The translations under genes and the position numbers were made by a program. Positions 21,261-64,000 of a stretch of 64,000 nucleotides of DNA are shown here, piece after piece. The notes beneath the pieces were generated by a model. It saw only the letters and a program-made list of their open reading frames with translations, did not search any database and had not been told where the DNA came from. The DNA lies in the NCBI GenBank assembly GCA_973895155.1, contig OZ316898.1:5939079-6003078 (forward strand), in the 5' to 3' direction. Within the stretch, counting starts at the first letter, position 1, and every line of letters starts with the position of its first letter. The stretch comes from Marsupella aquatica (Eukaryota; Plantae; Marchantiophyta).

Positions 21261-23881
21261 TCAGAAGACGGAGAGAAATTCGTCAAAATCAGAAGAGGAT
21301 GAGTCGTTCTGGTCTTTTCTGAAACTCATTTCCTCGAAGTACCAATCAATGAGTGAGGTCATGGAAATGAAATTTCCTTTTCTCACTTTCAGAAACGAAT
21401 CGACCAAGGCGGGCATGACTTCAGCACACTTCTGAAAATGCCTATCCACAGTCAATTCCCGAAACTTGAGATCTTTCTGGAGCGTGGCTAGTTTTTCCGA
21501 AATCCAATCTGTCCCACGTCCTAGAGTGATCAAAGCTTTGCGACCATCCTCGATCAATCGTGCCATCACCGTCAAACTGCTGGCTTGTTTTTGCCGTCCA
21601 TGCATGTTGTCGGTGAGCTCATTGACCTGTAATTTCAGCTTTTCGAAGATTTCACTCACATATTGACCAATATCCCTGATGGTTGGCAAAGCGTTGGAGG
21701 TCGCTTTGGGTTGCATCTTTTGGGACTTTTTACCTTCAGAAGCTGACCCTACTTTCCCAATCCTTTTGGTTATTTCCTCAGCGTCCTTGTACAGCTTTTG
21801 GACCTTGGCACGGCCAGATCCCGACTCCAGGTCTTGGATCTTTCTGGTTATTTCAGCGTTCAAGTCTGATGCCAACGTGGCCCAGTGTTGAGTGTTCCCA
21901 TCAATCTTGCTCAGATTTTTGAGAGGTTCCCAATCTGACAAACGTCTACTGGTCTCTTTGACGCCTCCCTCTTCCGATGCAGGGGTTCCAAAGTCCTCAT
22001 GTGTCAAGTCAGGCTTATTTAGAAATTTCCAGACTTCCTGCAAATTGCAAAGAACAGATCAAATCTTCTTAGTTGTTAATGACAAAATGCGTGCCCTTTC
22101 TGTTCTAAAAAGCTCTATCCTGCACTGGCCTGGTTCACGCCAAAGATTTACATTTCAGAAGTCTACCCTGTCACACAGAATGTTCGGACTAGGAAGGCTG
22201 CAAGGACAATTCTGGCCCGGATCTTGTCTAGGTCTCAGACGAGGTGTTGGAAATTCAATATACGAATCGAGCACTAGTGCCAACACCTGGAGTAAGTATT
22301 TGCTTTTCGAAAAGTATCCTCCATTTTCAGTAATCAACGCCAAAAGAGTATACCTGCTCATACTGCACGGATTCTTGTCGCTGTATCGTAGAGTGTTCCT
22401 GATTTGGGAATTCTGGAGAGCCACTAATAGTAGTGGGCAGAATTTTCATTTCCCCTTCGTTCTAAGGATCAGATTCAGGACAAAGCATTCAGAGGTGGAA
22501 GAAGGTTTAAGGATAACAAAATTGCCCAAAATTAGCAGTAAATTGCGTACATGACAATGTTAAAGATGGCAAAGTCGTTGCAAAGAAGGATAAGAACGAG
22601 CATAATATTGTAGTTACCTGCTGATATTGTCCGCCGTTCTGTAGCTCGACCGGAGAGTATGCGTGATTCTGACTGGAGAAGGTTTCGTAATAAGTACCAT
22701 ATTGCATAGTGACTGTTTCTCCGGCCTGCGGATCCGCATCAGACGAAAGATTAGAAATAGGAAGAAGCATTCACGATAACAGGAATAGCTCAAAATTTTA
22801 GAGACGGATGGCGTTCCTCTCGGCCTTTCGTAAAATAGAGAATCGAGAGAGACCCATCGTTCGTTGCGTTGGGCAGAGTAAGCCTTTCCCCTTGGGACTA
22901 TATCCAGCTGAGTATAGAAGCTTAGGACTAAGAAAATAGTTTAAGATGACACATACCTCTCAAGAATAGTGATGAATAGCGTTTAGATTATCGAAGTAAT
23001 GGCAAAGAAGGGGAAGAGCTCGCAGAGTAGTACACCTGCTTATGAGACCGGTCTTTCTGTAGCTCTGTCATAGAGTACCCTTCATGTGGAATAAAGGGAG
23101 ACCCATAACCTGTGGTATTGGGCAGAGTGATCATGGTCGCTTCGGCCTGCGAATCCGCACCAGCATGGGAGGTTAACCAGGAAGAAGCTTTGAAGATGAC
23201 AACAAGTGCTCCAATGAAGCGGCAATTGTCTTTAGTAAGAAAGCCTTTGCAGAGAATGGACAGCTACCTACATTGTCCACTTACCCTTGGGTGTGTCGAA
23301 CATTGCCCCTGATCTCTAGCGATATTGGCACTCATCGACTCTTCAGACAAGGGCTGTAGTCCCAAATTTCCGAGCGAGGCGAGAATTTCGCTTTCAGCCT
23401 GTATATCGACATCAGCAACGAAGGTTAGAGATCGTCCTCACAACTACCGTACAGCATCCATTCCAACACGCAATTACTGCAAGGGGTAAGGAATCAAAGA
23501 TCATCGCCTCCAGAGTTACTATCCCTTCGCTCCTGCTAAAGGACTTCAGATCTATGGGCAGCGCAGATGATCTCATTTGCTTCCCCATGAGGTGAGACCA
23601 AAATAGGCATCACCCACTGTGGTCCACTATGTACTAGTGCTGTGCTGACTTTAGTACAGATACTGTGGCACAGAATACCAAACCTGCTCTGGCTTTTCTG
23701 CGTCCACCTCTAGGACAACGCGGAAGCGACCAACGGCGACAATGGTACTGGTGAGAATGCGGAACCTCCGCCGTGCCTCAATCCGTTTTCGCTTTCGAGT
23801 GTCTTCCTCCACATCCGCATCCATCACATCTGCAGGCTGCAAACTCATGCTATACTGCATGGCCTCTGGAATCTGTTCCAT
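21261..23881 (-). CDS. Unknown-family paralog A (~433 aa): N-terminal CaM-binding-like helix, three ~36-aa repeat exons, C-terminal helical domain
   Basis: Exons 23881-23684, 23146-23036, 22725-22618, 22461-22354 and 22037-21261. All introns are GT-AG and phase 0, and the frame is open throughout. Splice sites are conserved with paralog D. A non-coding 5' exon ends at about 24725. Confidence 0.75.
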
Positions 23882-26800
23882 TCTCGATTTTACTGTCTGC
23901 CCTAGAGTCTGCCAATAAAAAACGTATCAACTCACGATCCAGCTACCATAAAGCCGTCCAACAAACATTCGAGCTTGATGCCCCTGACTGCCATTGAGCA
24001 ACAGCGAGGGCAGTATAAACGTCCAGAACTGAGATCTCAAAGAGCTAAACCGCAAAGAGGAGTCTCAAATTGAGCTCATAGAATCAGCCCCGAAATACAA
24101 ATGCGACCGGTATCTGAACAAGCAGATGTACAGAGAAAAAGACAATCCATTCCGAATTTCAGGAGCGAGAAGGAAACTCCCAAGGGAAATCGTCATCATG
24201 ACTGTGTCGCATAGATTTCATGGAAAGATTAATCCGAAAGAGAACAAACAGCCAGGTATTGTGTGTACGTATGAATCGGCGTGAAGGTGAACTCTTCTTC
24301 TATGCCGCCTGCATTAGTCTGATTGCTTTACTTCGGCAAGAGAAGACTAGGGGCATTCTCTCAATTCCCACCAGCACGAGACAGGACACGAAGGTTCATC
24401 CACAACCCAACTCCGCCTCCCCCTCCCCCTTTTCTCTGGACGCTAAACCCTTCGGGTTGACAAGGTGCCCTAAAGGCAACACAAGCAAGGCGAGACTTAC
24501 AACACGCACAACAACTCTTGGAGCCAGAGATGGGAGTAGGACGGACTGAACCCATCACAGACCAAGGCGATTCAAGAGCAACATCAGTATTTTGCAGTCA
24601 GTAACTACCGGCTTTGTTAACTAACAACAAGAAAACCATATCGGAAGAGAAAGTTTCTGACCAGCTACTTGGAAAGGACCACGAAATTGCTAATTGAAAA
24701 GCAAGCTAAAGAGTACAGTAGTACCTGAAATGATGAATCAGATCAACGCAAACGCCAGAGACTGCACACTTCTGCACAACAGTGACAGACAATGGTTCAA
24801 TGGTGAGTCGGATAAAATGCGGCTCTCTTACTCGTCGTTCGCCCAAAATCAGTCGAGCAATCCCCACCCAAACGAGCTGTGCCTGCGCCTGGCAATTGCA
24901 GAACTTTCCGCCGTGAAGCGAGTGAAATCCTGAGACCGTGAGATCCCAAATTCTGAGAGCTCGCTGATCATGACCAACCAGTCTTCTGTCCTCTCTACTT
25001 ATGTTGTAGCCAACAAGAACCCCGCGAAAGCCAGATTGCCGACATTGTTTGACGCCTGTGACACGGTCAACCAGAGGTTTCTTAGAAGCTTCTTCGAATT
25101 GATTTTGCTCGACTGTCTCCTGTGCAGAAGGAGCGTCAATGGCGGCGGCTTTTCCGCCATTGAACTCCGGGCAAAGGACTGATTTTTCGCCCCGGTGTCA
25201 AATGTTACCTTTTGTGAAACACGGATGATGCTACGAGTACTCTTCATATAATTTTGCTAGATATTAATATCTGACGGTTGGATTTCCCTACATTTAAGGA
25301 GGAGCGTTAGATCTGGCTTATTGGGTTGTGGCTAGGTGTGAAATGGGCCGATGGAACGAAAATGTTTTTTGACTAAAGTGGCCAGCTGTGAAATGGGCTC
25401 ATGGAACACCAAAATCCTAGTAATGTATTTTACTGAAGTGGTTAGGACTTTTCAGTGAGCTGGAATCTATTGTAGCTAGTTTTTGAGACTGAAGAAAGGC
25501 TGGTCCAAAGGTGAATCTATCTGTGCACTGCGCACCAATCATGAATTGTTGGCTTAGATTAATTTCTGATAGTTGGATCTCCTTAGGTTTAAGGATAACC
25601 ATCAGATTTTGGCTTACGGAGTCTATGGCTCCATGGGAAAACTGGCTCATGGAGGACAGAAAACCTAGCAAATGTTTTGCCTGAAGTGGCAGCAACTTTT
25701 CAATGAAATGGAATCTAGTGAAATTTTGCCACTCAGAAAATGCTGGTCCTCGTCAGATGCAGAAAGGTGAACCTACCTGGTTATTCGGTTTGGTTACTGA
25801 GCTGGAAAATACCATGAGGAGTAAATACCTACACCAGGAAGTACCTACACCAGGAAATACGTACACACCACCCTTTTCAAGCCTTTTCAAGGTAACTAGA
25901 GCTAGAGAGTAAATACCCAAACCAGAAAATACCCAAAGAATATATATTTTCTTAGTTAAGTAACGCAAAGAGGAAATACCGGACTAGTAAGTACCCAGCC
26001 AACTTGACCCAGAAAGATGAATGTATATAGAGAGGAGAATGGTGTGTTATATATAATTATTAAAATGATGACATGCATGATAATTTTTTATCATTTCATT
26101 AACATTCAAAGAATATGAATAATACGATAATATGAATAGTACGGTAATATGAATAGTCTTTTCTGGGTTACCGTACCCATCCCCATTCACAGGATAAATA
26201 TATCTTGTTTAAAAATGCGTCAACTACAAGCTAGACTTGGGGGTTAGGTTTCTAGAGTGAAATGTCTCGACTGTAACTCCATGGTCCACCATGTGAATGA
26301 AAAAACTTATGACTATGATGTATGTCAAGTGATAATTATCATACATGCTTCTTTTTATTATGATTTCTATTTACATTAAAAAAATGTATTCTATGGCCCC
26401 ATCATAACATATGTGCAAAGAAAGATGAATGTATATAGAGAAGAGAATGGTGTGTTATATATGATTATTAAAATGATGACATGCATGATAATTTTTTATC
26501 ATTTCATTAACATTCAAAGAATATGAATAGTAAATATACTTTGGTGACAATTTTATTGTACTCTTTGTTATTCACGTTCAAAGAACAGGTAATTGGGGTT
26601 AGTAATTAATAAAACTTTGGGCTGAAGCAACATGAATCAACAAACACCTAGAAGTTGTACATTGCTATGAAACTAGTGTTATTTATTTTGAATTTCACAG
26701 ATTTGATCAGCAATCACTTCCACAACATCGAACGGCCCCCATTCCAGTTGTGTGGCTCTGGTGAGAGTTCGGCAGGGGTCCAAAGTCAAACCAGGCCAGA

Positions 26801-27160
26801 GTGAGTCCACAACAGATCTAGACTGTTGGTGATGCGTACAATGGCATGATGTGAGATGTCAATGCTCTGGAAGTTAACCTGAGTGGCTCCCTCAGTGCCA
26901 TGTTAGTCAATATTTTAGAAGCAACGGCATATTTTAAAATAATGCCAGTTCCTATGGCAATTTAGAAAGTCTCATTTTACAAAAACAAAGCCCCAGCCCA
27001 CTTGTTTATGAAAATTAAAGGAGAGGAAGTCATGTCAGTACAAGACAAGACACCACTAGACCAAAGCAGACCATAGGGCACCAAATTGCAGCAGAGGGAA
27101 AGACCAACACCTCCACCCCCTCACACACAACAAAATAGAAAGACAATTAGTTCGTGGACC
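22450..27160 (-). repeat. Inverted segmental duplication arm; partner ~58300-62700
   Basis: Reverse-complement similarity followed by eye through the exons and introns of genes A/D (high identity) and through about 2 kb of upstream DNA (much lower identity, with indels). Confidence 0.85.
26011..26529. repeat. ~115-bp direct repeat (26011-26120 and ~26419-26529)
   Basis: AGAAAGATGAATGTATATAGAG...TTAACATTCAAAGAATATGAATA appears twice, nearly identical. Confidence 0.85.

Positions 27161-28480: not shown

Positions 28481-28483
<3 letters not shown>

Positions 28484-28534
<51 letters not shown>
28484..28534. repeat. (GA)25 microsatellite
   Basis: Perfect GA run. Confidence 0.95.
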
Positions 28535-28540
<6 letters not shown>

Positions 28541-34758: not shown

Positions 34759-35458
34759 TTATACTCCCTCCGTCGTCTGTAAAAGTTCGAGAGGATCGAA
34801 GGGTTGAGCACAAATAACATGAATATTGGCACAGCGGCCATTATACCAGTTTAGGGTTCCGCGTATAATTAATCAGATCAGCACTTTGGAACTCTGATCT
34901 GTTTCAATTCGTTGTGCCCTGCAGAGCGTTGTGCCCTGCAGAGCGATTATAATTTACCGGGCAGACTTACTGTGCAAATGACGCAAAGAAACCACAAAAC
35001 TTGTCCGTAGCTTTATTTCCATATCAATCCTTCAATGTGAAATGTGGGGTCTTTGAACATGACACCCTGATGCAATCTAATAATAAATCAGCAAAGTGCC
35101 ATTTGCCACCAGTGTAGTGTGCTGCTTGAGGTAACTAATGACTATAACCTCCTCTACAGCTTCCTTTATCTTCCATGTTCCATATGTGCTCGATCGATCA
35201 CCTCTCAAGCCCTTCATGCGACAATGCATGTTTGTCAAGCTCGATCGTATTGGATAGATGTCGTAGGAGAGAAGGGCGAACCTGCTGCTCTTTCTCTCCC
35301 TCCACCTCCATTACCGACTTGAACCGGTTAACAGCTACGAGAGTAGTGGTGGCAACACGGAACTTCCTCAATAGTGCCTCAATTCGTGCGCTCTTGCGAG
35401 TGACGTCTACCGGAGGGTCCTCCTTCAGAATCTCGAGCGGAGGACTCTTGAAATGCAT
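34759..35458 (-). CDS. Unknown-family paralog C: short (~64 aa) product that is essentially only the CaM-binding-like module; 3' structure uncertain
   Basis: Exon 35458-35282 gives MHFKSPPLEILKEDPPVDVTRKSARIEALLRKFRVATTTLVAVNRFKSVMEVEGEKEQQ and ends at the same phase-0 CAG|GT as A/D. The next good acceptor (TTTTACAG, 34777) adds TTEGV then a stop. I found no downstream exon for the helical domain. Confidence 0.55.
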
Positions 35459-45782: not shown

Positions 45783-46163
45783 CAATCCCTGGAGTCGTCG
45801 TCGTACTTGCGAACAATCCCTGGAGTCGTCGTCGTACTTGCGAACGAGATTGCCGCTGCTGCTGCTGCTGTGCTACTGCTGCCGGTTCTCGCTTGTCTTT
45901 GGGGATCGGGAGTGCTTTAAGGCGCGTGGATTCTGCCGGTTTGCTCAACCCAATCGAGACACTTTTGAGACGAGCCGACAGTTCTTTCAGAGCTGCTCTG
46001 GTCCTGGTGTGAACTGCTACTGCTACTGCTGCTGCTGGTTCTCGCTTGTCGTTGGGGAGAGCTTTAAGGCGCGTGGATTCTGCTGGTTTGCTCAACCCAA
46101 TCGAGACACTTTTGAGACGAGCCGACAGGTCATTTAGAGCTTCTCTGGTTCTGGTGTGAACTT
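45783..46163. repeat. Nested tandem duplications (30 bp x2, then ~145 bp x2) upstream of gene B
   Basis: CAATCCCTGGAGTCGTCGTCGTACTTGCGAA appears twice; GCTTTAAGGCGCGTGGATTCTGC...GAGACGAGCCGACAG...GGTGTGAACT appears twice. Confidence 0.85.
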
Positions 46164-46738
46164 CTGCTTGGGCGACAGGTTGTGGGAAGGGGGCGATTGG
46201 AGCTGTAATCTCGACGGTTTCGACGATCTCTACGAACAGGCTGTGGAAATCAGGGAGGTAGGTAACGCTGAAGCTGCTGTGTATGAATGGACGGATCCCT
46301 GGAGGTTTTCAACCCCTGCTCTGACCTCCAATTCGATTCCGTTGTTCGTTGTTGAGGAATTACTTCTGCACATTAGCGTGTTCTATGAGCAACTTGGTAA
46401 CTAGTAACGTGCCTCGTGAATTCTGTAGGTCGGGTGGCTGCTGCGCTTTGTCGAGGGCATTCTCTGGTGCAAGTTGAATTACCGCGGTCTGGAGAACTCC
46501 GAGCAATGAGCTGGATAGAACTCCTAGGTAAGTCAACCAAATCGGTGTCTGGCGAGCACGTCTTTCCTTTTCTAGGTGGGTCATCTCAAACAGTTAGACT
46601 ACATAGGTGATAGGTTGGAAGGGAGGCGGAATGTAGAAGTCTCTACTTTTGTCAGAAGCTCGTCACCCGAATGGGGATTTAGATGAAGATCGGGATCCAT
46701 CCACAGCCGCATCGTTCATCTAGCAAGCGGGATTGATT

Positions 46739-47433: not shown

Positions 47434-50400
47434 ATGGAAGGACTGGAAGACATCCGATTGCCATTTGAATCGGTGGCCACACAAGAGTCGGCAGAAGTTG
47501 TAGCCAAACCGATATTTTGCGAGCGCGAGTGTCCTGAGGTGGTCATGCAAAAGTCTTCGCCGAGTTTTTGGAAGTGGCGCAGAGTCAGCCTCGCAATTAG
47601 TGCCTGTAATCGAATGCGGCTTGTTGTGGAGAGCATCAAGGCTGTGGACGAACAGACAGCAGAGAAGGTTGCTATTGGCAAAGACCCTCCATGTTGCATC
47701 TTAATCATGTTCTGTCGGTTTAATTGCCATATTTTGTTGACAGGCATGGTCAAAGTTGTTTCAGTAGGAGAGACAACATTCAGGTATAACACCTTGAGGT
47801 CCTATGGTCTTTTCCTCAACGCTTCTTGTAGTGCTAGACGTCCGTAGTAATCCGGCATCGAGGTTGCTAATTTCTCCGTTTTCCATCTAAAGCATTGCCT
47901 AGGCAATCTATGAATCGAGGTTATGAAATATCATTATCACAGGGGCACCGTCTACGAGAGAGTGATCGGGATTGAGTAGCCTATGCTAACCTCGTGTGTT
48001 CTGTTCCAGTTTCCTCAACAGGAACAATATTGCTAATCTTGCGGAATGTACAGACCGGAGCCGCAATCAACTTCGCATTCGCCGAAGCATCGCGGGCGCA
48101 ACTTCCTGACCTCTTTCCTTGCGCGGACTACATGGTTGGTAAAATACCGACGTTCAATTGCAAGTGTTTCCTAACGCCTGGTGGCAAACTCAGACTTGAA
48201 ATGGAGAGCGTGGAGGCTGTGGAGCACGCCTTTGTCGACCAGGTTTGTCGTTCTTTCATGATGCCATAACGAGTAATTTTATCGTCACACGTACATCGTT
48301 CACGACAGTACTGTGTCCATATGAGTTGAAGAGGTATTGCGGCAGGGAGGGCAGTTGTGTATGTAGTAATGGCAAACTAATGACTTTGTCTCCCAATCTT
48401 CAATCCATACTTGTAGGTTGAGTCTTTAATTGATTTCGCCGGTGGGAATCAACAGGTTGCAAGCGAGGTCTCTGCTCGCGTGGATTTTTTCACGTCATTG
48501 ATTACAGGGCCAGTTGAAGAATCGCCGGATCCGGAACTGCAGAACATGATTCCGGAGGTGTTCTCTACTCAGACCGCAGTAAGGAAATGCAAACACACTG
48601 ACTTTATGTGTTCTTCGCATCAGATGGGATGGTCATGGTCAATGATTTGCGAATTTCGATAGCTCTAGGAGTCAGACCTGCGATCTTCCGGTTTGTGAAA
48701 GTTGCTTGCCTACCCTGAGTACCGCTCGAAAGGTTATGTCTGCCCTGTACCAATTATTAGAGCAAAGCGTGCTCAAAGTTAAGTTTTCTGAAAGGCGTTA
48801 GATCTGGATATTGTTGACAGTCACTTTGCTTCATGATTCATAGCAAAGTACCATGCGCTTCTAAGTGAGAAGTATGATTGTATCAGGCTGTTCTGCTGTG
48901 TCCACTCCCCCGGATATTACGGCTTGTTATCCGCTTGCTTGCTTTGATGATTAGTAGGGACGTGCCCTGTACGTATCACATTTCACCGTAGATCTATGTT
49001 CTACCTCCTAATGGATTAAAATCCATCTGTATCTCTGGCATGTATTTATGTGGGGGCCCCGCCTCCCCTTTCCCACTCATCACAGGAGATCAATAAACTT
49101 GTTCTCTTCATGGTATCAGAGCCTTCCCAGGATAATGCCTGAGGGCTCAGTCTTTTCTTCCGTATTTTTCTGTAGTTCCGAGTTGGTAAGAATCACTCGC
49201 GTAGCTTTGGAGTCATAGCTGTATAGTCTTACGTTGCAGGTGATAGATCCCTGTCGTGTTCTCCGTAGTACTCAGGAATTTATTTTCATAGGTGATAGGT
49301 CCCTGTGCATTTCTTAATAGTACTCAGGAACGATGAACCAGGATATGAATTTCTCAATGTCCAAGGACGAGAAACTTAATGGGAACAACTACCCATTATG
49401 GTCCTACAAGATGAAGCAGAGTTTCATCAAGGAGAAGATTTGGTACGTAGTTCGGGAGAATCTTCTTGGAGTGATCTTTGATGCTAACGATCCTGTCAAT
49501 CCCACTCCCGCTGAGCGACGTACAGCTCAGAACAAGGCATTATATATGCTGACTAAAGCAGTAGAGGACAAGATGCTTGCTAGATATGTGCGGATTGATG
49601 ATCCAGCTTTTCTCTGGGCAGAACTCCGCCGTGCTTGTGCAGGCAACACCACTTCTCGCCGTGTTGTACTCAAACGGAAGCTTTTCAGTCTCAGATTCCC
49701 TGAGTCTGCTACCATGACTACTAACTTCAGCACTGTCAATGAGTTACTTAACGATCTTGCTGCTGTGGATGTCGCTTTTACTGATGAAGAATTGCAGGGA
49801 GTAATCATTGATGCTCTACCCCGTAGTTGGGAGACCTTCGGAGCTGTTCTTGCAGGACGAGAGAATATGCCTTCCTTCTCCCAACTGGAGAATATTGTTC
49901 GTGAAGAAGAGAGTCGTCGTGGTGCTCGCAATTATGCTGGTGAAGAGGCGCTATTTGTCCGTCATGTTTTCCCCCCACCTGCACCTTATGGCCGGTTCAA
50001 CAACGCAGGGGGACGTGCCCGCGGTCGTGGAGGTCCTAATTTTGGAGGAAGAGGGGGCCGTGGACGTTTCCCGGCGCCATTGAACAACAACAACCGTGGA
50101 GACAACAACAACCGTGGGGCCTGCTTCACGTGCAGCGACCCCAGCCATGTTGCCCGCAACTGCCCTTTCCGTGGTCTCGAAACTGAGTTGCAACGCCTCA
50201 CCGCTCGTATGACTCAGATGAACATTGGGGCTGGACGTGCTGCAAACCTAGTGGAGACAAATTTTGGTCCAAACCCGAATCCCGACGTTGAAGAATATTT
50301 TGATGCTGCACCTGAGAATGTCGATACGGTTACAGCTGACCAGATTCTGGAGGCCAATTTTACTGAGGTGATAGCACAGCCTGATCACCCGGAATGGATC

Positions 50401-53400
50401 TTCGACTCTGGAGCTAACACCCACCTCACTAGTGACAAATCTGGACTCACAAATTTTGTAGCTCTTGCCCCTGGATCCTCGGTGGCAACCGCTGGTGGGG
50501 CTGCCTTGGATATCAAGGGTAAGGGCACCCTCATTCTTGATCAGAATAAACTTTTGAACGTTTTGTATGTGCCGCGTGCCCGTCGTAGCCTTATCTCTGT
50601 TGGAAATCTGGCTGATTTAGGACAAACTATATGTTTCAATTCCTCACAGTGTGTGGTGTTAGATCAAGAAAATCAAGTTAGCATGCATGGGGCACGTGAT
50701 CCAGTGACTCGCCTATACACTCTAGTTCCCAAGCCTCCACCTAAGCTTGAGCAACTCTCCTTACCGATAGCTTCATGTCACATCGCCACTACTTCTTCAT
50801 CTAATGCTGAACTTTGGCACAAACGCCTTGGACATATCCATTTTCAGAAATTAGCACACATGAGTTCAACTCACCTAGTTGTCGGCATTCCACATATTTT
50901 GCCAGTCAACACAATATGCAGCACTTGCATGGTAGCCAAGCAAACACGGGAAAGAATTCCAAAGCACTCTCTGACACAAACAACTAGGCCTTTTGAGCTA
51001 GTTCACTCTGACGTTTGGGGCCCAGCCCGTGTACCATCCTTAGCAGGCTCTCGCTATGTCCTCACATTTACCGACGACTACACACGGTATACCTGGACAT
51101 TCTTCCTTCGTTTCAAATCCGAAGTCTTTTCTACTTTCAAAGACTTTTGTGCTTCTGTCCAGAGTCAATTCGGATATCAGGTTGGATGCCTGCGAACCGA
51201 TCGAGGTGGAGAATACATTTCTCATGATTTTCAACAATTCTGCTCCACTAGAGGCATTTTTCGTCAACTCACTGCCGCCTACACTCCACACCAGAACGGT
51301 GTCTCTGAGCGTAAAAATCGAACTCTCATTGAAGCGGCTCGCAGCCTTTGCTTTGGTGCTCATTTTCCGGCACCTCTTTGGGAAGAGATGGTGCGGACTG
51401 CTACTTATATTCTGAACCGATGTTCCACTCGAGCTCTCTACAAAACAACTCCTTTTCAGCATCTTCATGGAATCAAACCTGACGTTAGTCATTTCCGAGT
51501 CATTGGCTGCTCAGCATATATTCACATCCCTGCTCCATTACGCTCTAAGCTTGAACCAAAATCTCTCAAAGCTATTTTTGTTGGTTACGATGAAAACACC
51601 AAGGGATATCGTTGTTACTCGCCCAGTAGACGTAAAATTATTATCAGTCGCAATGTTCGTTTTGACGAGTCTGAACTTGGCATCTTTGCCGTTGCTGGTC
51701 CTGAACCCACTTCCATCGATTTTGGGGATTTATCGCCTTTTGACTCAATTGCTCCACCTATACCAGACATTGTTCCTGCTCCCGATGATAATACCGACCC
51801 AGACTCCACTCTAGGAGATCACAAGGATACTGCTCCGCCTGACACGGTTATAGCAGATCCACCCATAGCTCCAGTTGAATATCGTCGCTCTGGCAGACTC
51901 CGCTCTCATAATTCTAGGCTTCTTGGGTTTTATGCTGAACCTCCTCCTTTAGAATTATCGGCTTGTGCTATCGAAACTTCTGATCCAACTATCACTGACA
52001 ACATTTCTCTTCGTGAAGCACTCACTCACCCTGACTGGTCTGGAGCTATTGACGAAGAGATGGACTCCATCCATAAAACCAACACTTGGACCCTTATGGA
52101 ATTACCCCCTGGCAAGCGCGCCATTCCATCTATGTGGGTCTTCAAACGGAAACCTATCTCTGCCACTCATGGTCGACTGAAGGCTCGTCTTGTTGCCAAG
52201 GGCAATTATCAGCAACATGGCATCGACTACTTTGAGACTTTTGCGCCAGTGGTCAAATGGACAACTCTCCGAACTATCACTGCCATATGTGCTTCCCGTG
52301 GCTGGCAGATCACTCACATGGATGTCGACACGGCTTTTCTAAACAGCAAAGTTCATGAAGATATTTACATGCATCAGCCTCCTGGACGTCGCATTGCTGG
52401 TAAGGAGCATCTTGTATGCCATCTCAACAATTCACTCTACGGCCTTAGACAATCCTCCAAAGCTTGGTACGACACTTTACATGCACTATTACAGAAGCTT
52501 GGTTGGATTCGTAGCTTACTTGATAACAATCTTTACTATTTTCTTGATGGATCAGACATTACTGTGTTGCTCACTCATGTTGACGATTTTTTTCTCACTG
52601 GGAGCAACGATACTCTTATTAGCTCCCACAAGACTGAACTTCGTAAGCACTTCAGCATGAAGGATCTTGGCCATGTTCAAAAATATCTAGGGATAGAATT
52701 TGATTCTTCTGCTACCGGAATCAAAATGCATCAACACAACTACTGCAATGAAATTCTTCAAGAATTTCATATGGGCTCTTGTACTCCGGCCCTCACTCCC
52801 TTACCGACAGGTACCGTTCTATCTACTGATTCCGCCAGTCCTCCTGTCGACGCTCATCTTTATTGTCGGATGGTAGGGAAACTAATTTACCTTACCAACA
52901 CTCGCCCTGATATATCCTTTGCTGTCAGCCTAGTCAGTCGTTTTATGCAAGATCCACATGAAGATCACATGCAAGCCACCAAGCACATCTTCAGATATCT
53001 TCGACACACTCTCAACTACGGCATTTTTTACAAACGGCATGCTCCACTCACTCTTTCTGCTTATACCGATGCCGACTGGGCTACCTGCCCTACAACTCGC
53101 CGATCTGTTGGGGCATATTTACTTACTCTTGGGGATAGCCCCGTTTCTTGGAACAGCAAACGTCAAGCCACAGTGAGTAAATCTTCTACGGAATCAGAAT
53201 ATATGGCTCTATCATCTGGGGCACAAGAAGCTGTATACATCCGCCGACTGCTGCTGGAACTTCAACTCATTCCCCATGTTGAGGTCACACTCAATTGCAA
53301 AGACCATCACATTCTTGATGCTCTTCACTCTTCTCGTCCAACTCTTCACTGTGACAACGAAGGTGCCATCAAGCTTGCACGAAACCCCGTTTTTCATGCT

Positions 53401-55284
53401 CGCACCAAACATATCGAAGTCCATCACCACTTCGTTCGGGAACGCGTCCTTGAGGGGGAATTAAACCTCACGTACATCCCAACTGATCTTCAACCTGCTG
53501 ATGTACTCACCAAGGCCTTATCCCGACCTCACTTTGAACGACATCGATCTGCTATTGGAGTTCTGGACTTGAGTTGCATTCCCGATACTATACCACTTTG
53601 AAAGCCAACGCCACATTTCTGTTTAGTTCTTTTGATCTGTCTGTAGCCTGTTTGATCTGCTCCGGTGGACCTATCAAACTCTGTGTACATCCAAGTGATT
53701 TACGTAATCTTGTCACATCCTGTTTACTTTCTCATACACTTAGAGCGAGGGAGGGTGTTGACAGTCACTTTGCTTCATGATTCATAGCAAAGTACCATGC
53801 GCTTCTAAGTGAGAAGTATGATTGTATCAGGCTGTTCTGCTGTGTCCACTCCCCCGGATATTACGGCTTGTTATCCGCTTGCTTGCTTTGATGATTAGTA
53901 GGGACGTGCCCTGTACGTATCACATTTCACCGTAGATCTATGTTCTACCTCCTAATGGATTAAAATCCATCTGTATCTCTGGCATGTATTTATGTGGGGG
54001 CCCCGCCTCCCCTTTCCCACTCATCACAGGAGATCAATAAACTTGTTCTCTTCAGATATTCGTTTTGCTTGCCTTATCGTGGACTGATAATGAACGTCAT
54101 TCAATCTGTTAAGTGCCACTTTGGTATCGCAAGGGTCTATCGATGTACGTTGTAAGGCTGCGCGGCATAGTATATCAAACCTCTCCAGTTCCTCAATGAC
54201 TTCTCACAGTGAATCGTACGGATTTTTGTTTCTAATCTGGTTTGCTGTTGATGATCGTTAGGATGTCGGCCCGGATGTCCTTGCATTAAACGACATTTCT
54301 GACGGTGGATCATTCCAAGCCTTCCTCGAGGAGATTTTAAGATCAGGGCCAATTGGCGAACCGGCCGTGGGTTCGACGTACTCTCCTAGGACATCCGCCA
54401 TCGATGAGGCAATGCAAAGCGGAATATTCGATCAGTTCTCGGTTCGTTGGTCGACTCCTTTTTTGTGATCGTTCGAAAATTTAGGATACAGTAGCGAACT
54501 TAGTATAGTAACTCGTTATGATAAGTTTCCCCAATCTTTTGCCTGATTCCATTTTCTCCGACTTTGACATTACTAACTTTGAGTTTTCGAGTTAGTAATA
54601 GATGGTGGATACAGAAATCCAGAAATTGAACAGATCTTAAGGTATGGCATGTGTGCTTGAAACTTGGCTTTCTAACCCTAATTCATTTGTTGATCCTATC
54701 CTCAGGAACAGCATGACGTTTCTGATACAGAGTCCCCGCTGAAGACCATGGAGGATGCTCCATTGTGGAAAGACACCATCATAAATCCTGTGAACGAAAA
54801 AATTGAGGAAATTTACTTGGGTATTGATCAGGCATCTGACCGCACAAAGCTAGAAGCCACGCAATCCAAAGCCCAGGAGTGTTCTGAGAGATTACAGAAT
54901 GAGATCCGCCACTTCCAGGGAGATCTTAACGGTATGTTCAATGACTTGAAAACCACACTAGCAAAGATTTCGAAAACCGTGCCAGGACATATCCAACTCC
55001 AGCTCAACAGAGCAATTTCTCAAGTCAACCATTTCAGCACCAAAGAACTGAAACGCTTCCTCCACGAAGCGAACGGAATAACGAAAAATCTCGTCAAGGT
55101 TGTCGACGACCTTCGGTACCGAAATGTCTCAACAAGCAAGATGTTCCAAAATTGTGCTTCGTCTGTCACTCAATTGGTGGAATCAGTCTTAGCATTGACC
55201 TCGAAGTTCATTTCCGTGGCAGACTTCAATCGGTACACAAGCGAATTGTACACTCTACCTAATTTTCGCGGTGGACGGTTCTAA
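47434..55284 (+). CDS. Unknown-family paralog B (~467 aa): CaM-binding-like helix, private middle domain, C-terminal helical domain; copia-2 sits in an intron
   Basis: Exons 47434-47667, inferred micro-exon 47768-47783, 48010-48242, 48417-48578, 54262-54441 and 54706-55284. The last three have splice sites and frame conserved with D. The last exon aligns with the last exon of A (DLRYRNVSTSKMFQNCA...LVES.L...KFISV vs DLKFRELTVDRHFQKCA...LVDS.L...NFISM). Confidence 0.68.
48812..54054 (+). mobile_element. Intact, very young Ty1/copia LTR retrotransposon
   Basis: 299-bp LTRs at 48812-49110 and 53756-54054, identical by eye. TSD GATAT. PBS TGGTATCAGAGCC at 49111. PPT AGAGCGAGGGAGGG. Single uninterrupted 1422-aa ORF. 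Confidence 0.98.
49333..53601 (+). CDS. Copia gag-pol polyprotein (1422 aa)
   Basis: LNGNNYPLWS gag, CFTCSDPSHVARNC zinc knuckle, WIFDSGA protease, LWHKRLGH, integrase HSDVWGP/RTDRGGEY/ERKNRTL, RT (HVDD), RNase H YTDADWA...CDN. Confidence 0.97.
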   Translation: MNQDMNFSMSKDEKLNGNNYPLWSYKMKQSFIKEKIWYVVRENLLGVIFDANDPVNPTPAERRTAQNKALYMLTKAVEDKMLARYVRIDDPAFLWAELRRACAGNTTSRRVVLKRKLFSLRFPESATMTTNFSTVNELLNDLAAVDVAFTDEELQGVIIDALPRSWETFGAVLAGRENMPSFSQLENIVREEESRRGARNYAGEEALFVRHVFPPPAPYGRFNNAGGRARGRGGPNFGGRGGRGRFPAPLNNNNRGDNNNRGACFTCSDPSHVARNCPFRGLETELQRLTARMTQMNIGAGRAANLVETNFGPNPNPDVEEYFDAAPENVDTVTADQILEANFTEVIAQPDHPEWIFDSGANTHLTSDKSGLTNFVALAPGSSVATAGGAALDIKGKGTLILDQNKLLNVLYVPRARRSLISVGNLADLGQTICFNSSQCVVLDQENQVSMHGARDPVTRLYTLVPKPPPKLEQLSLPIASCHIATTSSSNAELWHKRLGHIHFQKLAHMSSTHLVVGIPHILPVNTICSTCMVAKQTRERIPKHSLTQTTRPFELVHSDVWGPARVPSLAGSRYVLTFTDDYTRYTWTFFLRFKSEVFSTFKDFCASVQSQFGYQVGCLRTDRGGEYISHDFQQFCSTRGIFRQLTAAYTPHQNGVSERKNRTLIEAARSLCFGAHFPAPLWEEMVRTATYILNRCSTRALYKTTPFQHLHGIKPDVSHFRVIGCSAYIHIPAPLRSKLEPKSLKAIFVGYDENTKGYRCYSPSRRKIIISRNVRFDESELGIFAVAGPEPTSIDFGDLSPFDSIAPPIPDIVPAPDDNTDPDSTLGDHKDTAPPDTVIADPPIAPVEYRRSGRLRSHNSRLLGFYAEPPPLELSACAIETSDPTITDNISLREALTHPDWSGAIDEEMDSIHKTNTWTLMELPPGKRAIPSMWVFKRKPISATHGRLKARLVAKGNYQQHGIDYFETFAPVVKWTTLRTITAICASRGWQITHMDVDTAFLNSKVHEDIYMHQPPGRRIAGKEHLVCHLNNSLYGLRQSSKAWYDTLHALLQKLGWIRSLLDNNLYYFLDGSDITVLLTHVDDFFLTGSNDTLISSHKTELRKHFSMKDLGHVQKYLGIEFDSSATGIKMHQHNYCNEILQEFHMGSCTPALTPLPTGTVLSTDSASPPVDAHLYCRMVGKLIYLTNTRPDISFAVSLVSRFMQDPHEDHMQATKHIFRYLRHTLNYGIFYKRHAPLTLSAYTDADWATCPTTRRSVGAYLLTLGDSPVSWNSKRQATVSKSSTESEYMALSSGAQEAVYIRRLLLELQLIPHVEVTLNCKDHHILDALHSSRPTLHCDNEGAIKLARNPVFHARTKHIEVHHHFVRERVLEGELNLTYIPTDLQPADVLTKALSRPHFERHRSAIGVLDLSCIPDTIPL

Positions 55285-57955: not shown

Positions 57956-58045
57956 ATTCAATTCATTGTCTGCAAAATAACCTAAGAAACAAGAGATTTA
58001 GCTCAAGTCTGCAGGAGGGGCTATAATTGCCCATATTGTTATGGA

Positions 58046-58296: not shown

Positions 58297-60785
58297 GATG
58301 GGGTCCCCAAACTAATTAATTCTTTGTTGTATGGGAGGGGGTGGGATGTTGGCCTTTCCCTCCGTGGCCATTTGATGCCATATAGTCTACTCTGGTTGAG
58401 CAGTTTTGCCCCTAGTATACTTGGTAGTAACAGGGTTTCTTCCCCTTTACTTTTCAAAAAATATGTGGCTAGGAGCTTTGTTTTTGTACACTGAAATTCT
58501 GTAGAAACTGGCATTATCTACTCACATGCCATTTTTTTTTCTTCTAAAATATTGACTAATATGCGACAGATTTAACCAGAAACCACTCAGGTTAACTTCC
58601 ACAACATTGATGGCCCACAGCAAGACATATACCCCATCACGAACAGCCAAAACACCCAAGATCTGTCGTGGACTCCCGCTCACCTGGTTTGAGTTTGACC
58701 CCCTGCTCCCACCCTCACCTGGAGCCTCACAACTGCAATATGGGCCATCAATGCTGTGGAAGTGATTGCTGATTAACACTGTTGAATAATAGTAAATAAC
58801 ACTAGGTTTTGTTGCCTTCAGCCCAAAATTTAAATAATTATATATTCATCATGAGGACTGGGATGGGCACTAGGGTAAAACTAAGAAAAAGGATGTTGCC
58901 AACATCGTTCTACTTAACTAAAAATAGGGTGTTGTATAGGTATTTCCTAGTCTAGGTTTTACTCTCTAGGTCTACTTTACTAAAAAAAAAGGATGTTTTT
59001 TTTGGGTATTTTCTGGTCTGGGTATTTACCCTCTGGGTCTGCTGACCTCAAAAATGGGTGTGCCTCCTGGTCCCCTTATTTTACTCTTTTGAGTATTTAC
59101 TAGTTACAAGAACCAAACCGAATAACCCTTGGAGATGCTCTTATCTCGGGCATGAGTGGTGGGCCGTGCAAATAGATTCACCCTTTTCCCTTTCTGACAA
59201 GGACCAGAGTTTTTTGGTGGTGAAAATTTGTTACATTCCACCTCATTGAAAAGTCTTTACCACTTTGGACAAGAGGTTTGCTAGGTTTTTTGTCATCAGG
59301 CTGTTTCCCATCTATCTGCACTCCACAAGTCAGAATCTGACTGTTATCCTACATCTTGGGAGACCCATCTGTCAAAACCCAATCTAAGAAAACAGGTCAT
59401 GAGTAGTTGGCACGGATACGAGCAAGATAGATTTCTCCTTCATACTAGCTTTTTTTTAGTGGCAAAAATTACCCAGAGTCCACCTCGGTGAAAAGTCATA
59501 GCCACTTTAAGCTAAAAAATTACTAGGTTTTCTTTTCTGCCATCAGCCAGCCACAAATTTAGATACTATCCAAGAGCTTTTAATTACATTGTCACTAATG
59601 ATATTTTTATTTACAATTTTGTCATTGCTTTTATTGTATTTACAAATCTACCACGGTTTACAAATATTCCCATCTTGGTGATTTTGTTGAACTTGTCAAC
59701 TTTATATAAAATCGTGGCATCCTTGTAAATAAAAAAAACCACGATAATATTATCAATCTAAATATCTTCAGTGACAAAGTAATTAAAAGTTGTATCCAAT
59801 AACTCAAAGTATAACTGTCATCAAGGGAGACTGAACTGTCAAAATTTAAATTTTCTAATACATTGATATAAAAGATACACTTGGGATCTAGGCTTACATA
59901 GTGAACCCTTCTAGAGGGCAACTCAGGGAAAAACAAAACTAGTAAGGGGCAAAACTGAAAATACCAAAAACAAGGGGAAGTGCAAAGGTGAAAGGCAAAC
60001 AACAGAGATAAAGGGGTTTTTTTTTGGTATAACCTCTATATCCCTACATGCTAGTCTAACCAAATTATAGAAAGAAGATTCTTAACATATGAAATTCCTT
60101 CACACGAGATAACATTTGCCACGGTGGCGAAAACGAAGAGCTTGCTGGGAGCTCAATGGCGGGAAACCCGCCGCCGTTGACGCTCCTTCTCGACGACTCT
60201 GTGGAGCCAGTCCAATTCGAAGAAGCTTCTATGAAACCTCCGGTTGACCGAGTCCCAGGCTTCAGTAATCAATGTAGCGGGACAAACATTGTCGGCCTCT
60301 GTTGGACGACCATAATAAGTAGAGAGGAAAGAACAGTGGTTGCTCAAGATCAGCGACCGCTCAAAAATTGGGATCTCACGGTCTAAGGATTGCACTCGCT
60401 TCACCAAGGAAGGTTCCGCAATTCCCAGGCGCAGGCACAGCTCGTTTGGGTGCGGATTGCTCGACGATTTTGGCGGACGACGAGTGAGAGTGCCGCATTT
60501 GTCCGACTCACTGAGAACGTTGTCTGTCGCTGTTGTGCGGAAGTGTGCCTGGGGTCTGCGTTGATCTGGTTCTTCATTTCAGGTACTACTGTACTCTTTA
60601 ACTTTCTTTTCAATTAGCCTTGCCTTTTGGTCACCTTGCCATCCGTAAGGGTTTAGCTTCCCAGGTAAAAGGGGGGTGGGAGTTGGGTTGTTGATAAACC
60701 TTCGTGTCCTGTCTCGTGCTAGTGGGAATGAGAGATGTCGCTAGTCTTCTCTTGCCGAAGTAAGCAATCGCACTGATGCAAACAG

Positions 60786-60925
60786 CATTGAAGAAGAGTT
60801 CACCTTCAAAACGATTTATACATACATGCAGGCTGCATTGAAGAAGAGTTCACCTTCAAACCGATTTATACATACATGCAGGCTGCATTGAAGAAGAGTT
60901 CACCTTCAAACCGATTTATACATAC
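60786..60925. repeat. ~50-bp tandem repeat, ~2.8 copies, in the 5' intron of gene D (single copy in gene A)
   Basis: GCATTGAAGAAGAGTTCACCTTCAAACCGATTTATACATACATGCAGGCT repeated. Confidence 0.88.
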
Positions 60926-61312
60926 ACATAATACCTTGGTGTTCCGTTCTCTTTCGGATAATCTTTCCATGAAATCTATGCTGCAGCGACACAGCCATGA
61001 TGACGATTTCGCTTGGGAGTTTCCCTCTCGCTCCTGAAATTCGGAATGGTTCTTCTTTTTCTCTGTGCTCTCTGCTTGTGCAGATACCGGTCGCATTTGT
61101 ATTTCGGGGTAGATTCTATGAGCTCTATTTGAGACTACTCTTTGGGATTGAGCTCTGAGATCTCAGTTCTGGACGTCTATACTGCCCTCGCTGTTGCTCA
61201 ATGGCAGTCAGGGGCATCAATCTCTAATGTTTGTTGGACCGCTTTATGGTAGCTGGATCGTGAGTTGATAAGTTTTGATTGGCAGACTCTAGGGCAGACA
61301 TTAAAATCGAGA

Positions 61313-64000
61313 ATGGAACAAATTCCTGCCGATGTGATGGATGCGGATGTGGAGGAAGACACTCGGAAGCGAAAACGGATTGAGGCACGGAGGAAGTTCC
61401 GCATTCTCACCACTACCGTTGTCGCCATGGGTCGCTTCCGCGTTGTCCTGGAGTTGGACGCAGAAAAGAAAGAGCAGGTTTGGTATTCTATGCCACGGTA
61501 TCTGTACTAAAGTTAGCAGAGCACTAGTAGATAAATGGATCACAGTGGGTGATGCCTATTTTGGTCTCACCTCTTGCGGGAAACAAATGAGATCATCTGC
61601 GCTGCCGACAGATCTGAAGTACTTTAGCAGGAGCGAAGGGATAGTAACTCTGGAGGCGATGCTCTTTGATTCCTTACCCCTTACAGTAATTGCGTGTCTG
61701 AATGGATGCTGTACGGTAGTTGTGAGGGCGATCTCTAACCTTCGTTGCTGATGTCAATATACAGGCTGAAAGCGAAATTCTCGCCTCGCTCGGAAATTTG
61801 GGACTACAGCCCTTGTCTGAAGAGTCGGTGGATGCCAATATCGCTAGAGATCAGGGGCAATGTTCGACACATTCAAGGGTAAGTGGACCATAAAGGCAGC
61901 TGTCCCTTCTCTGCAAAGGCTTTCTTATTATAGACAATTGCCGCTTAATTGGAGCATTGGTATCTTTTCAAAGCTTCGTCCTGGTTGACCTCCCATGCTG
62001 GTGCGGATTCGCAGGCCGAAGGGGCCATGGCCACAGGTTATGGGTCTCCCTTTATTCCACATGAACGATATTCTATGACAGAGGTAGAGAAAGACCCGTC
62101 TTATAAGCAGGTGTACTATTCTGCTAGCTCTTTCCTTATTTTTCCATTACGTAGACATTCCTAAACGCCCTTCACCACTATCTTGAGAGGTATGTGTTAT
62201 CTTGAAATCTTCCTTTTAGTTCTAAGCTTCCATACTCATCTGGATATAGACCCAAGGGGAAGTAATTACTCTGCCCCACGCAACTATCTGTGGGTCTCTC
62301 TTGATTCTCTATTTTACGAAAGGCCGAGAGGAACGCCATCCGTCTCGAATTTTTGAGCTAGTCCTGTTATCGTGAATGCTTCTTCCTATTCCTAATCTTC
62401 CATCCTGATGCGGATCCCCAGTCTGACGGGGAAATGATCACTATGCAATATGGTACTTATTACGAAACCTTCTCCAGTCGGAATCTCGCATACTCTCCGG
62501 TCGAGCGACAGGACAGTGGGCAATATCAACTGGTAACTACGAAATTATGCTCGTTCTTTTCCTCCTCTGCAACGACTTTGCCATCTTTAACATTGTCCTG
62601 TAAGCAATTGACCACTAATTTTGGGCAATTTTGTTATCCTGACAGCTTCTTCTACCTCTTAATGTTTTGGCCTGAATCTGATCCTTAGAACGAAGGGGAA
62701 AAGGAAACAGGGCCAGTTGAAGAATCGCCGGTTCGGGAACTGCAGAACATGTTCCCTGCTCAGATCGCGGTAAGGAAATGCAAAACACACTGCCTTTATG
62801 TGGTCTTCGCATCAGATGGGATGGATATATTCAATAATTTGTGAATTTCGATAGCTCTAGGAGACCTGCGATCTGCCGCTTTGCAAGAGTCTCTTTTCGA
62901 CCCTGAGTACCGCTCGAAACGTTATGGCTGCCCGTCCTAGTAGAGCAAAGCGGGCTCACAGATCTCTTAAAGGCTTTAGACGTGGATCTTTGTTTTTGCT
63001 TTTACCATCTTGCTTCAGAATGATATAATGTTGCCCAGCATTGATAATGAACGTGACACATCGATTAGGTGACACTTTGGATCTATCAGTACTACGTTGT
63101 AAGGCTGCGCGGCTGAGTCAATCAAACCTCTCCAGTTCCTCAATGACTTCTCATAGTGGATTGTCCAGATTTTAGTTTCTAATCTGGTTTGCTGTTGATG
63201 ATCGTTAGGATGTCGTCCCGGATGTCTTTGCCTCAAACGAGGTTTCTGACAGTGGATCATTCGAAGCCTTCCTCGAGGACCTTTTAAGATCAGGGCCAAT
63301 TGGCGAACAGGCCGTGGACTCGCCGCACTCTCCTAGAATATCGACCTTTTATGAGGGAATGCAAAGCGGGACAATAGATCAGTTCTCGGTTCGTTGGTCT
63401 ATTCCTTTCCTGTCATCACTCGAAAGTTTGGGCTACAGTAGCGAACTTACTATAGTAGCTCGCTATGATAAGTTGCTCCAACCTTATGCCTGGTTCCATT
63501 TTCTCCGTTTTTTAGAGTACACGCAGCGGTGTTAGAGTCGAAGTCAGATTTTAATTCAAGGCATTGAATCATCGATCAGTCAGATTTCGAATCAGGCTTC
63601 AGGCTTCACGATATCTCGAAGTTAGTAATAGATAGTGGATATAGAAATATAGAAATTTAAGAGTTTTCGAAGCCTTAGGTATGGCATGTGCTCAAAGCTT
63701 CTCGATTATGTACTGTGGCTTTCTAATCCTAATTGTTGATCCTATCCTCAGGAACAGCATGATGTTTCTGATTCAGAGTCCCCGATGCAGACCATGGAGA
63801 ATAATCCAGAGTGGACAAACTCCATCATACATGCTGTAAACACAAAGATTTCGGAAATTTACTTCTGTTTTGATCAGGCATCTGACCGCACCAAGCTACA
63901 AACAACGCAATCCGAAGCCGAGGAGTGTTCTGTTAAATTACAGAAAAAGATCCGCCACTTCCAGGGAGAATTCAACGGTATGTTCAATGAATTGAAAACC
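61313..64000 (+). CDS. Unknown-family paralog D (runs off the window): chimera with an A-type 5' half and a B-type 3' half
   Basis: Exons 61313-61477, 62015-62110, 62422-62532, 62689-62769, 63209-63388 and 63752->64000. All are phase 0, GT-AG and open. Indels relative to A or B are 33, 15, 3 and 12 nt, all multiples of 3. Confidence 0.75.

Follow-up and report, generated by a model that had tools for sequence, protein, structure and literature searches.

Exon structure of the four copies

The window analysed here, a stretch of 64,000 nucleotides from the liverwort Marsupella aquatica, carries four related gene copies, designated A, B, C and D. Gene A, located on the minus strand, was rebuilt from the sequence as six exons, all with GT-AG borders and all in phase 0, giving a spliced protein of 471 aa. 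Its first exon (23684..23881) encodes 66 aa comprising an acidic start, an RKRKR cluster and a basic amphipathic helix with the 1-8-14 anchors F..I..F, and ends at the phase 0 donor CAG/GTTTGG. It is followed by exon 2 (23285..23398, 38 aa, phase 0-0, donor AGG/GTAAGT), by three cassette repeat exons at 23036..23146 (repeat 1, 37 aa), 22618..22725 and 22354..22461 (36 aa each) and by the last exon (21261..22037, 258 aa plus stop), which encodes the helical C-terminal domain. A further cassette at 22805..22915 on the same strand has decayed; it lacks an in-frame donor and reads into a stop.

Gene B on the plus strand consists of four exons encoding a spliced protein of 387 aa, likewise rebuilt, and is an intact divergent member. 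Exon 1 (47434..47667, 78 aa) encodes a divergent putative sensor helix with the anchors W..I..M and possesses the donor AAG/GTTGCT at the homologous phase 0 position. The 3' end of exon 2 (48054..48242, 63 aa) resembles a partial duplicate of the exon 1 3' end, and the 3' part of exon 3 (48417..48578, 54 aa) is source-type sequence for a chimeric exon of gene D. The last exon (54706..55284, 192 aa plus stop) encodes the B-type helical C-terminal domain. A preceding sequence-only reading had placed gene B at 47434-55284. This span also takes in a Copia LTR retrotransposon of 5.2 kb, inserted in sense orientation into the last intron (48812..54054, plus strand). The element exhibits 299-bp LTRs with 100% identity, is bordered by a target duplication of 5 bp (GATAT) and contains an intact Gag-Pol ORF of 1422 aa. 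Its arrival must have been very recent, since the LTRs are identical. The empty site of this insertion is still visible in a paralog, and the region as a whole is rich in TEs.

Copy C on the minus strand comprises a first exon alone (35281..35458, 59 aa), which shows 46% identity to exon 1 of gene A. It had been thought to extend to 34759, but a second exon is unsupported and the C-terminal domain is absent. As there is no further family exon nearby, copy C is probably a relic of exon 1. A processed copy was ruled out, because the sequence 3' of the exon retains the intron start GTT(T/C)G.

Gene D on the plus strand has six exons, the last of which is open at the window end (64000). Exon 1 (61313..61477, 55 aa) carries an in-frame deletion of 11 codons compared to gene A. 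Exons 2 to 4 (61765-61878, 62015-62110 and 62422-62532) are A-type, and all exon indels compared to gene A are multiples of 3. The following exon (62689..62769, 27 aa) is chimeric and changes, with the frame kept, from A-type (to about 62706) to B-type (62707 onwards), and the last exon (63752->64000) is B-type, its first 83 codons being open before it continues past the window. An inverted segmental duplication with genes A and D as its arms (left arm on the A side, 22443..27160; right arm on the D side, 58302..62707) exhibits 87% identity near the genes and about 70% farther out. In gene D, a 5' half of A-type, derived from this inverted duplication, has recently been joined in frame to a 3' half of B-type. 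The duplication arms and the in-frame A/B junction bear out the assumption that the cluster grew by duplication and chimerism.

The public sequencing runs listed for the locus included no RNA run, and no spliced joints were detected in four of these runs. These runs cover introns and intergenic DNA and are DNA-like. They contain two skips of 42 bp and 33 bp, neither of which is an intron; the 33-bp skip corresponds to an indel between genes A and D, i.e. to paralog contigs.

Shared exons, relatives and selection

Exon 1 could be aligned in all four copies and ends with the motif ..E(Q/K) at an aligned phase 0 GT donor. Gene B was the weakest member in this comparison (hhalign E 5.8e-5 over 23 columns). 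The last exons of A-type and B/D-type were aligned with an hhalign probability of 96.3% (E 2e-9, 160 columns), and the middle exons align as one repeat of about 36 aa with one copy per exon. The homology of exon 1 and its common donor in A to D, the last exon shared by A, B and D and the cassette nature of the middle exons, all proposed before, are thus borne out by these alignments.

Relatives were searched exon by exon, and the protein P0002 of Calypogeia fissa was used as stand-in for the full-length protein. A phmmer search against 1.84 billion representatives matched 8 clusters, and a profile search of a set of 5.8 billion clusters retrieved 7 proteins, including 3 new ones. All of these relatives originate from C. 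fissa, Logan contigs or JGI contigs, in agreement with the supposed lineage restriction. A search with the last exon of gene A confined to proteins of 143-455 aa yielded no match, which is explained by this length limit, the relatives measuring 471-511 aa. Neither the exons nor the full-length C. fissa members matched a named family in Pfam or PDB, and protein domains of TEs (Gag, RT, integrase, transposase) were found exclusively in the inserted Copia ORFs and not in the family exons, so that the family is indeed an unrecognised one. Pfam matches to BORCS6, ATG17_like, KxDL, HAUS-augmin3, Laminin_II and ApoLp-III were far below the gathering scores and were rejected as coiled-coil noise. Two queries of the ESM Atlas gave no lead, both scores being below 0.9.

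P0002 (505 aa) was annotated independently and is encoded at a locus (L001) syntenic to gene A. It has the same exon boundaries and phases as gene A, and in both species the RNase P p29 gene is a neighbour. This agreement lends independent support to the rebuilt exon chain of gene A, and the cluster of four related copies is confirmed. The cassette that is decayed in genes A and D is an exon in C. fissa. The Logan contigs L002, L003 and L006 contain intron-like sequence 5' of the last exon and were therefore rejected as cDNA and regarded as genomic. L006 represents a B-type ortholog. The synteny of gene A including its RNase P p29 neighbour is also of importance for the question whether we are dealing with stable host genes or with transposon cargo or fragments of host genes captured in the Pack or Helitron manner. 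An origin of the latter two kinds might be suspected from the TE-rich surroundings and the chimeric exon joining in gene D. It appears very improbable in view of this synteny, of family exons free of TE protein domains and of genes that are not framed by terminal repeats.

Gene A is a conserved, syntenic member of the family under selective constraint; its last exon exhibits a dN/dS of 0.14 at a dS of 0.70 compared to the C. fissa ortholog. Because of this low value for the C-terminal domain, the family is not uniformly fast-evolving, and a rapid protein divergence of the whole family, as previously claimed, was not found. Diversifying selection was not supported either: genes B and D show a dN/dS of 1.20, which is not distinguishable from 1 (Fisher p 0.66). 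Compared to L006 the values are 0.80 for gene B and 0.66 for gene D. The B/D-type copies are accordingly near neutral (dN/dS 0.66-1.2), which is compatible with relaxed constraint. Between genes A and D the dN/dS is 0.64, and exon identity is about as high as intron identity.

These near-neutral values, the similar exon and intron identity between A and D, the reduction of copy C to exon 1, the Copia element in the intron of gene B and the abundance of TEs in the region would fit a situation in which gene A is the sole working gene, segmental duplication and TE activity having left B, C and D behind as decaying by-products. However, genes B and D as well as L006 all retain open frames and splice sites. 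The frames were kept through 100-131 substitutions, for which the probability of remaining free of stops by chance amounts to 0.03 and 0.007, the value of 0.03 applying to the last exon of gene B. Furthermore, the indels between A and D located at or in exons (33, 15 and 3 nt) are in 3 of 3 cases multiples of 3, while the intron gaps are not. The chimeric junction in gene D is in frame, and the Copia element is intronic and, judged by its identical LTRs, very young. We regard the reduction to one working gene as somewhat unlikely. It is rather probable, though far from certain, that the family is a genuine protein-coding one, so far observed only in leafy liverworts of the Calypogeia type, which forms a young, rearranging cluster and whose proteins consist of a calmodulin-type N-terminal helix, a disordered repeat linker and a helical bundle, the Ca2+/calmodulin mechanism being inferred.

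Predicted protein architecture and the N-terminal helix

AlphaFold2 predicted for P0002 a helix at residues 18-55 (pLDDT about 80), about 170 disordered residues (72-240, pLDDT about 30) and a long helical bundle (291-489, pLDDT 70-85). This prediction supports the suggested order of helix, variable linker and helical domain. Modelled alone, the C-terminal domain is all-helical with moderate confidence (pLDDT 65) and contains a helix of about 74 residues. Its profile matched only de novo designed helical bundles in PDB, and Foldseek gave no match for the model at E<0.001. The top 50 matches of VIA-align were generic long helical hairpins (Z 9.4-10.4, 5-13% sequence identity). An MLKL, HeLo, RPW8 or pore-forming fold, which had been considered for this domain, was not borne out by these matches. 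As the domain has no informative structural match, its designation as an "effector" is a guess.

The profiles of exon 1 were compared with 177,635 PDB sequences. The best match was 4aqr_D (E 0.0015 and 0.0061), the regulatory domain of the Arabidopsis pump ACA8 in a crystal structure together with calmodulin, with the next unrelated PDB protein about 100-200 times worse. In this alignment the W/F and RF anchors are in register and the 1-8-14 positions are aligned; a second, weaker match was located on the second CaM site of ACA8. The structure 4AQR comprises residues 40-95 of ACA8 with two CaM (PMC6255812), and autoinhibition and CaM binding map to overlapping sites of ACA8 (PMC3276087). The best single stretch of the ACA8 match reached an i-E of 0.11-1.3. 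Single-sequence phmmer searches with exon 1 did not find ACA8, so that the match comes from profiles alone, and hmmscan of the exon 1 peptides and the full-length C. fissa members did not detect the Pfam domain CaATP_NAI (PF12515) with E limits of 1 and 10. A, D, C and P0002 show the strict 1-8-14 pattern within a basic stretch predicted as helix (pLDDT about 80). Gene B possesses W/I/M with Met at anchor 14, the protein P0006 has L/V/F, and anchor 1 is missing in P0004 of C. fissa.

The helix may also be a generic one in a real family and not a calmodulin sensor. It might then serve as nuclear localization signal (RKRKR), as anchor to acidic lipids or membranes or as coiled-coil partner, with a merely compositional likeness to ACA8. 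The RKR(K/A)R cluster directly in front of the helix in A-type copies, the marginal, profile-dependent ACA8 match, the missing CaATP_NAI match and the occurrence of the charged 1-8-14 pattern in 2-14% of shuffled exon 1 sequences as well would agree with this. On the other hand, the best hit among all PDB sequences compared was a CaM-bound plant regulatory helix with its anchors in register, and the second match coincides with the second CaM site. Furthermore, the RKR cluster is missing in gene B and weaker in copy C, and yet the anchor pattern is retained. The generic helix has an appreciable but limited probability. As to the calmodulin gating proposed from the sequence alone, the profile match to the ACA8 helix (E 0.0015-0.006) is suggestive of calmodulin binding by the exon 1 helix, but no proof, and single sequences and CaATP_NAI gave no match. 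Regulation of the family by Ca2+ is a guess from sequence.

In the reading favoured here, exon 1 encodes a basic amphipathic helix of about 35 residues with the anchors F/W (1), I/V/L (8) and F/M/Y (14) and a core 'A-x-(G/N)-R-F-R', which resembles the N-terminal autoinhibitory CaM-binding helix of the ACA-type Ca2+ pumps of plants. The predicted disordered linker is rich in Y/Q/P/S and composed of 36-aa repeats. Because each repeat lies on its own phase 0 exon, gain, loss or exchange of linker exons would leave the reading frame intact. The last exon contributes an elongated helical bundle of about 200 residues without recognisable relatives. Most likely, Ca2+/calmodulin would clamp the N-terminal helix and so alter what the C-terminal bundle is capable of, possibly by freeing an inhibitory contact in cis or in trans, by analogy with the ACA pumps. 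Exon 1 might be a regulatory module of an ACA pump copied onto a new helical domain, giving rise to liverwort-specific Ca2+/calmodulin decoders or, alternatively, to soluble decoys for which calmodulin or the pump core would be the object of competition with the ACA pumps, with linker length tuned by phase 0 cassettes and diversification by paralog chimerism. We consider this last reading, with exon 1 as a copied pump module, tentative and rather doubtful. It is speculative to assign the family to immunity, allorecognition or reproduction.

Significance and comparison with known systems

The nuclear genomes of leafy liverworts are barely explored, and newly sequenced lineages often contain orphan families of this size. 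The finding touches no long-standing open question. The locus is a clean natural example of the origin of new genes, exhibiting an inverted segmental duplication, an in-frame chimera at the exon level with both parental types still there, symmetric cassette exons that were gained and lost and a fresh retrotransposon with its empty site in a paralog. If the N-terminal helix binds calmodulin, the family would represent a compact lineage-specific Ca2+-signalling module on an uncharacterised domain.

In overall shape, the C-terminal model is similar to chemoreceptor cytoplasmic domains, SMC arms and the coiled coil of the translocator IpaB/SipB. This likeness to elongated antiparallel bundles is a shape analogy of the model, with Z values as for any long helical protein. 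MLKL, HeLo and RPW8 domains, which occur in fast-evolving clusters of other lineages, are all-helical, too, but form a compact four-helix bundle in contrast to the helix of about 74 residues in our model; none of them was detected in Pfam nor among the Foldseek and VIA-align matches listed.

With the 1-8-14 calmodulin targets (MLCK M13-type, CaMKI/II) the family shares the anchor spacing, the net positive charge and the predicted helix, and we assume that the exon 1 helix can be likened to the M13 peptide itself. Unlike MLCK and CaMKI/II, the family lacks a kinase domain, and the exon 1 profile search of PDB contained no MLCK or CaMK peptides at E<=10. In contrast to the ACA pumps, it has no P-type IIB ATPase core but a disordered region and a helical bundle downstream, and a single helix instead of the two tandem CaM sites of ACA8. 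With the N-terminal domain of ACA8 it has in common an N-terminal basic amphipathic helix, a spacing of 14 residues between aromatic anchors, the core 'A-x-x-R-F-R' and a lead-in that is first acidic and then basic.

Spliced architecture and homology of the copies

Gene A was spliced from the sequence into six exons on the minus strand (23881-23684, 23398-23285, 23146-23036, 22725-22618, 22461-22354 and 22037-21261), each in phase 0 with GT-AG borders, giving a product of 471 aa. Its best full-length match is the Calypogeia fissa protein P0002 (CAM6092451.1, 505 aa), whose locus L001 is syntenic with the window, the adjoining RNase P/MRP p29 gene being also in place. The annotated exons of P0002 agree with our model in order, phases and boundary sequences. 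P0002 has one additional cassette exon, of which A and D contain a decayed counterpart (donor lost, in-frame stop). We accept the spliced architecture of the family chiefly because this annotation was made independently in a second species; the sequence-only reading had described the anatomy correctly. For this locus no RNA runs are listed; all four public runs that cover it look like DNA.

Compared to D, exon 1 of A contains a 33-nt in-frame insertion (EAMQYSMSLQP, 23834-23868). In the C. fissa ortholog, translation is annotated to begin at a position corresponding to the Met within this insertion, so that gene A may start at 23881 or at 23860. A contig in all four public runs skips the 33-nt segment and is most likely a D-copy contig placed on A. 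The stretch 17757-20348 (plus strand) is syntenic with the C. fissa p29 gene (PF01868) beside the A ortholog, and a further syntenic block, 4871-5430, matches the beginning of a C. fissa gene of 413 aa.

The exon-1 peptides of A, B, C, D and three C. fissa genes align, and in all of them exon 1 closes after ..E(Q/K) with a phase-0 donor at the aligned position. Exon 1 of B has diverged most (E 5.8e-5 over 23 columns when compared by hhalign with a profile of the other exon-1 peptides). Homology between the A-type and B/D-type last exons extends over the entire domain (hhalign probability 96.3%, E 2e-9, 160 columns), a 23-residue K-rich loop of the A-type being missing from the B-type. Between these exons, A, D and P0002 carry copies of one ~36-aa unit, a single unit per exon (consensus xEGEMxTxxxxTxYGSPSxPNxxxSxxExQxxxxYEQ), whereas the middle exons of B differ from this type. 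The family has a three-part architecture: a first exon encoding a predicted helix, middle exons, and a last exon encoding a C-terminal domain predicted to be helical.

Duplication, chimerism and transposable elements

An inverted segmental duplication, 87% identical near the genes, carries A on one arm (22443-27160) and D on the other (62707-58302). In the D exon 62689-62769 the A-like sequence ends at 62707 and B-like sequence begins with the reading frame unbroken; downstream, D tracks the B segments 48504-48812 and then 54085-54954. As D matches A 5' and B 3' of this switch, it is an A-5'/B-3' chimera.

The splice model of gene B (plus strand) comprises exons 47434-47667, 48054-48242, 48417-48578 and 54706-55284. 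Its last intron contains a Copia element of 5,243 bp (48812-54054) whose 299-bp LTRs are 100% identical and whose 1422-aa Gag-Pol ORF is intact; the target duplication is GATAT, and the empty site is seen in D. By eye, the 3' end of B exon 2 (48180-48242, ..RLEMESVEAVEHAFVDQ before GT) resembles that of exon 1 (47610-47667, ..RLVVESIKAVDEQTAEK before GT), donor included, and may have arisen from it by partial tandem duplication. Antisense ORFs without Pfam match are open in homologous introns of B (54137-54352, minus, 71 aa) and D (63015-63299, minus, 94 aa), which may be due to chance.

Copy C consists of an exon-1 homolog alone (35458-35281, minus). When all exons and proteins of the family were used as tblastn queries, nothing else was detected near C, and the short second exon that had been proposed for it is unsupported.

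The window is eukaryotic, with about 44% GC and many transposable elements. An older Copia-type LTR retrotransposon spans 8918-17140 (LTRs 8918-9261 and 16795-17140, 95.4% identical), its Gag-Pol ORF being in several pieces with RVT_2 and SH3_retrovirus matches. Self-BLAST revealed degenerate direct (tandem-like) repeat arrays at 40899-41908, 11301-11704 and 45862-46168. The ORF 1372-1710 (minus) contains a long G/F/P-rich repeat and has no Pfam match.

Selection and distribution

The last exon of A is under strong constraint, as indicated by an omega of 0.14 against the C. fissa ortholog (dN 0.098, dS 0.70); for exons 1 and 2 omega is about 0.55, based on few sites. B-type values are higher: 0.80 for B and 0.66 for D against L006, a Logan contig with a B-type ortholog, and 1.20 for B against D, which is indistinguishable from 1 (Fisher p 0.66), so that diversifying selection is not demonstrated. 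With omega at 0.66-1.20 and frames kept, the B/D-type is fast-evolving or relaxed yet open. The chance of a stop-free frame is 0.03 for the last exon of B and 0.007 for that of A. Exons 1-4 of A and D show an omega of 0.64, exon identity being similar to intron identity, and the three A/D indels at or in exons (33, 15 and 3 nt) keep the frame. The proposed cluster of related copies is real. Its supposed mode of evolution is borne out by half: duplication and chimerism hold, rapid protein divergence does not for the constrained A-type.

No Pfam family reached threshold for any family exon or the C. fissa proteins. Among 1.84 billion representative proteins, phmmer with the last exon of A matched eight clusters only: six unnamed C. 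fissa proteins, one Logan contig and one JGI metagenome contig. Searching 5.8 billion clusters with P0002 and the domain profile added three further proteins, two from C. fissa and the Logan B-type ortholog. The family is new and lineage-restricted, as had been suggested. At least nine members are annotated in C. fissa; they are spread over several contigs, and two of them form a convergent pair 6 kb apart. The four-copy cluster seems specific to the window's species, since no other family member lies within 10 kb of the C. fissa A ortholog. This species is distinct from C. fissa: ortholog dS between the two is about 0.7, and non-coding DNA is about 70% identical.

The C. fissa protein P0001 contains the C-terminal domain twice in tandem. 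Its annotated N-terminus resembles a truncated exon 1, and exon-1-like sequence lies just upstream of its annotated start (L005, the locus carrying P0001, 20848-21032, minus); this may reflect mis-annotation or a degenerate first exon.

Predicted fold and resemblance to ACA8

For P0002, AlphaFold2 with the family alignment predicted a helix at residues 18-55 (pLDDT about 80) and further helices within 291-489 (70-85), residues 72-240 being disordered (about 30). In the domain-only model of gene A, which is all-helical (pLDDT 65), a single helix spans about 74 residues. Foldseek against the PDB gave no match at E<0.001 for the C-terminal domain model. VIA-align matched it to chemoreceptor hairpins, SMC arms and IpaB with Z 9.4-10.4, values which the tool itself notes are to be expected of long helical proteins in general. 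An MLKL, HeLo, RPW8 or apolipoprotein identity, raised earlier as a fold to check, is thus unjustified.

The exon-1 profile found as best match among all PDB sequences chain 4aqr_D, the regulatory domain of ACA8, a plasma-membrane Ca2+-ATPase of Arabidopsis. E was 0.0015 for a profile of five sequences and 0.0061 for one of seven, ~100-200 times better than for the nearest unrelated protein. The 4AQR structure comprises ACA8 residues 40-95 with two calmodulins bound (PMC6255812). The profile segment riEArrkfRivtttivAvnRfrlVlEvdaeke pairs with ACA8 SIERLQQWRKAALVLNASRRFRYTLDLKKEQE, and a second, weaker stretch maps onto the second calmodulin site. A, D, C and P0002 have strict 1-8-14 anchors, B has W/I/M and the C. 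fissa protein P0006 has L/V/F at these positions. However, single-sequence searches with exon-1 peptides missed ACA8, the best single stretch of the profile reached an i-E of 0.11-1.3 only, and the charged 1-8-14 pattern also occurs in 2-14% of shuffled exon-1 sequences. On this balance we consider calmodulin binding by the exon-1 helix slightly favoured, and the calmodulin-type sensor proposed from sequence plausible. In ACA8, the calmodulin-binding site is overlapped by the autoinhibitory region (PMC3276087). By analogy with the ACA pumps, Ca2+/calmodulin on the N-terminal helix might, as a rather doubtful further step, relieve an inhibitory contact or alter the partners of the C-terminal bundle.
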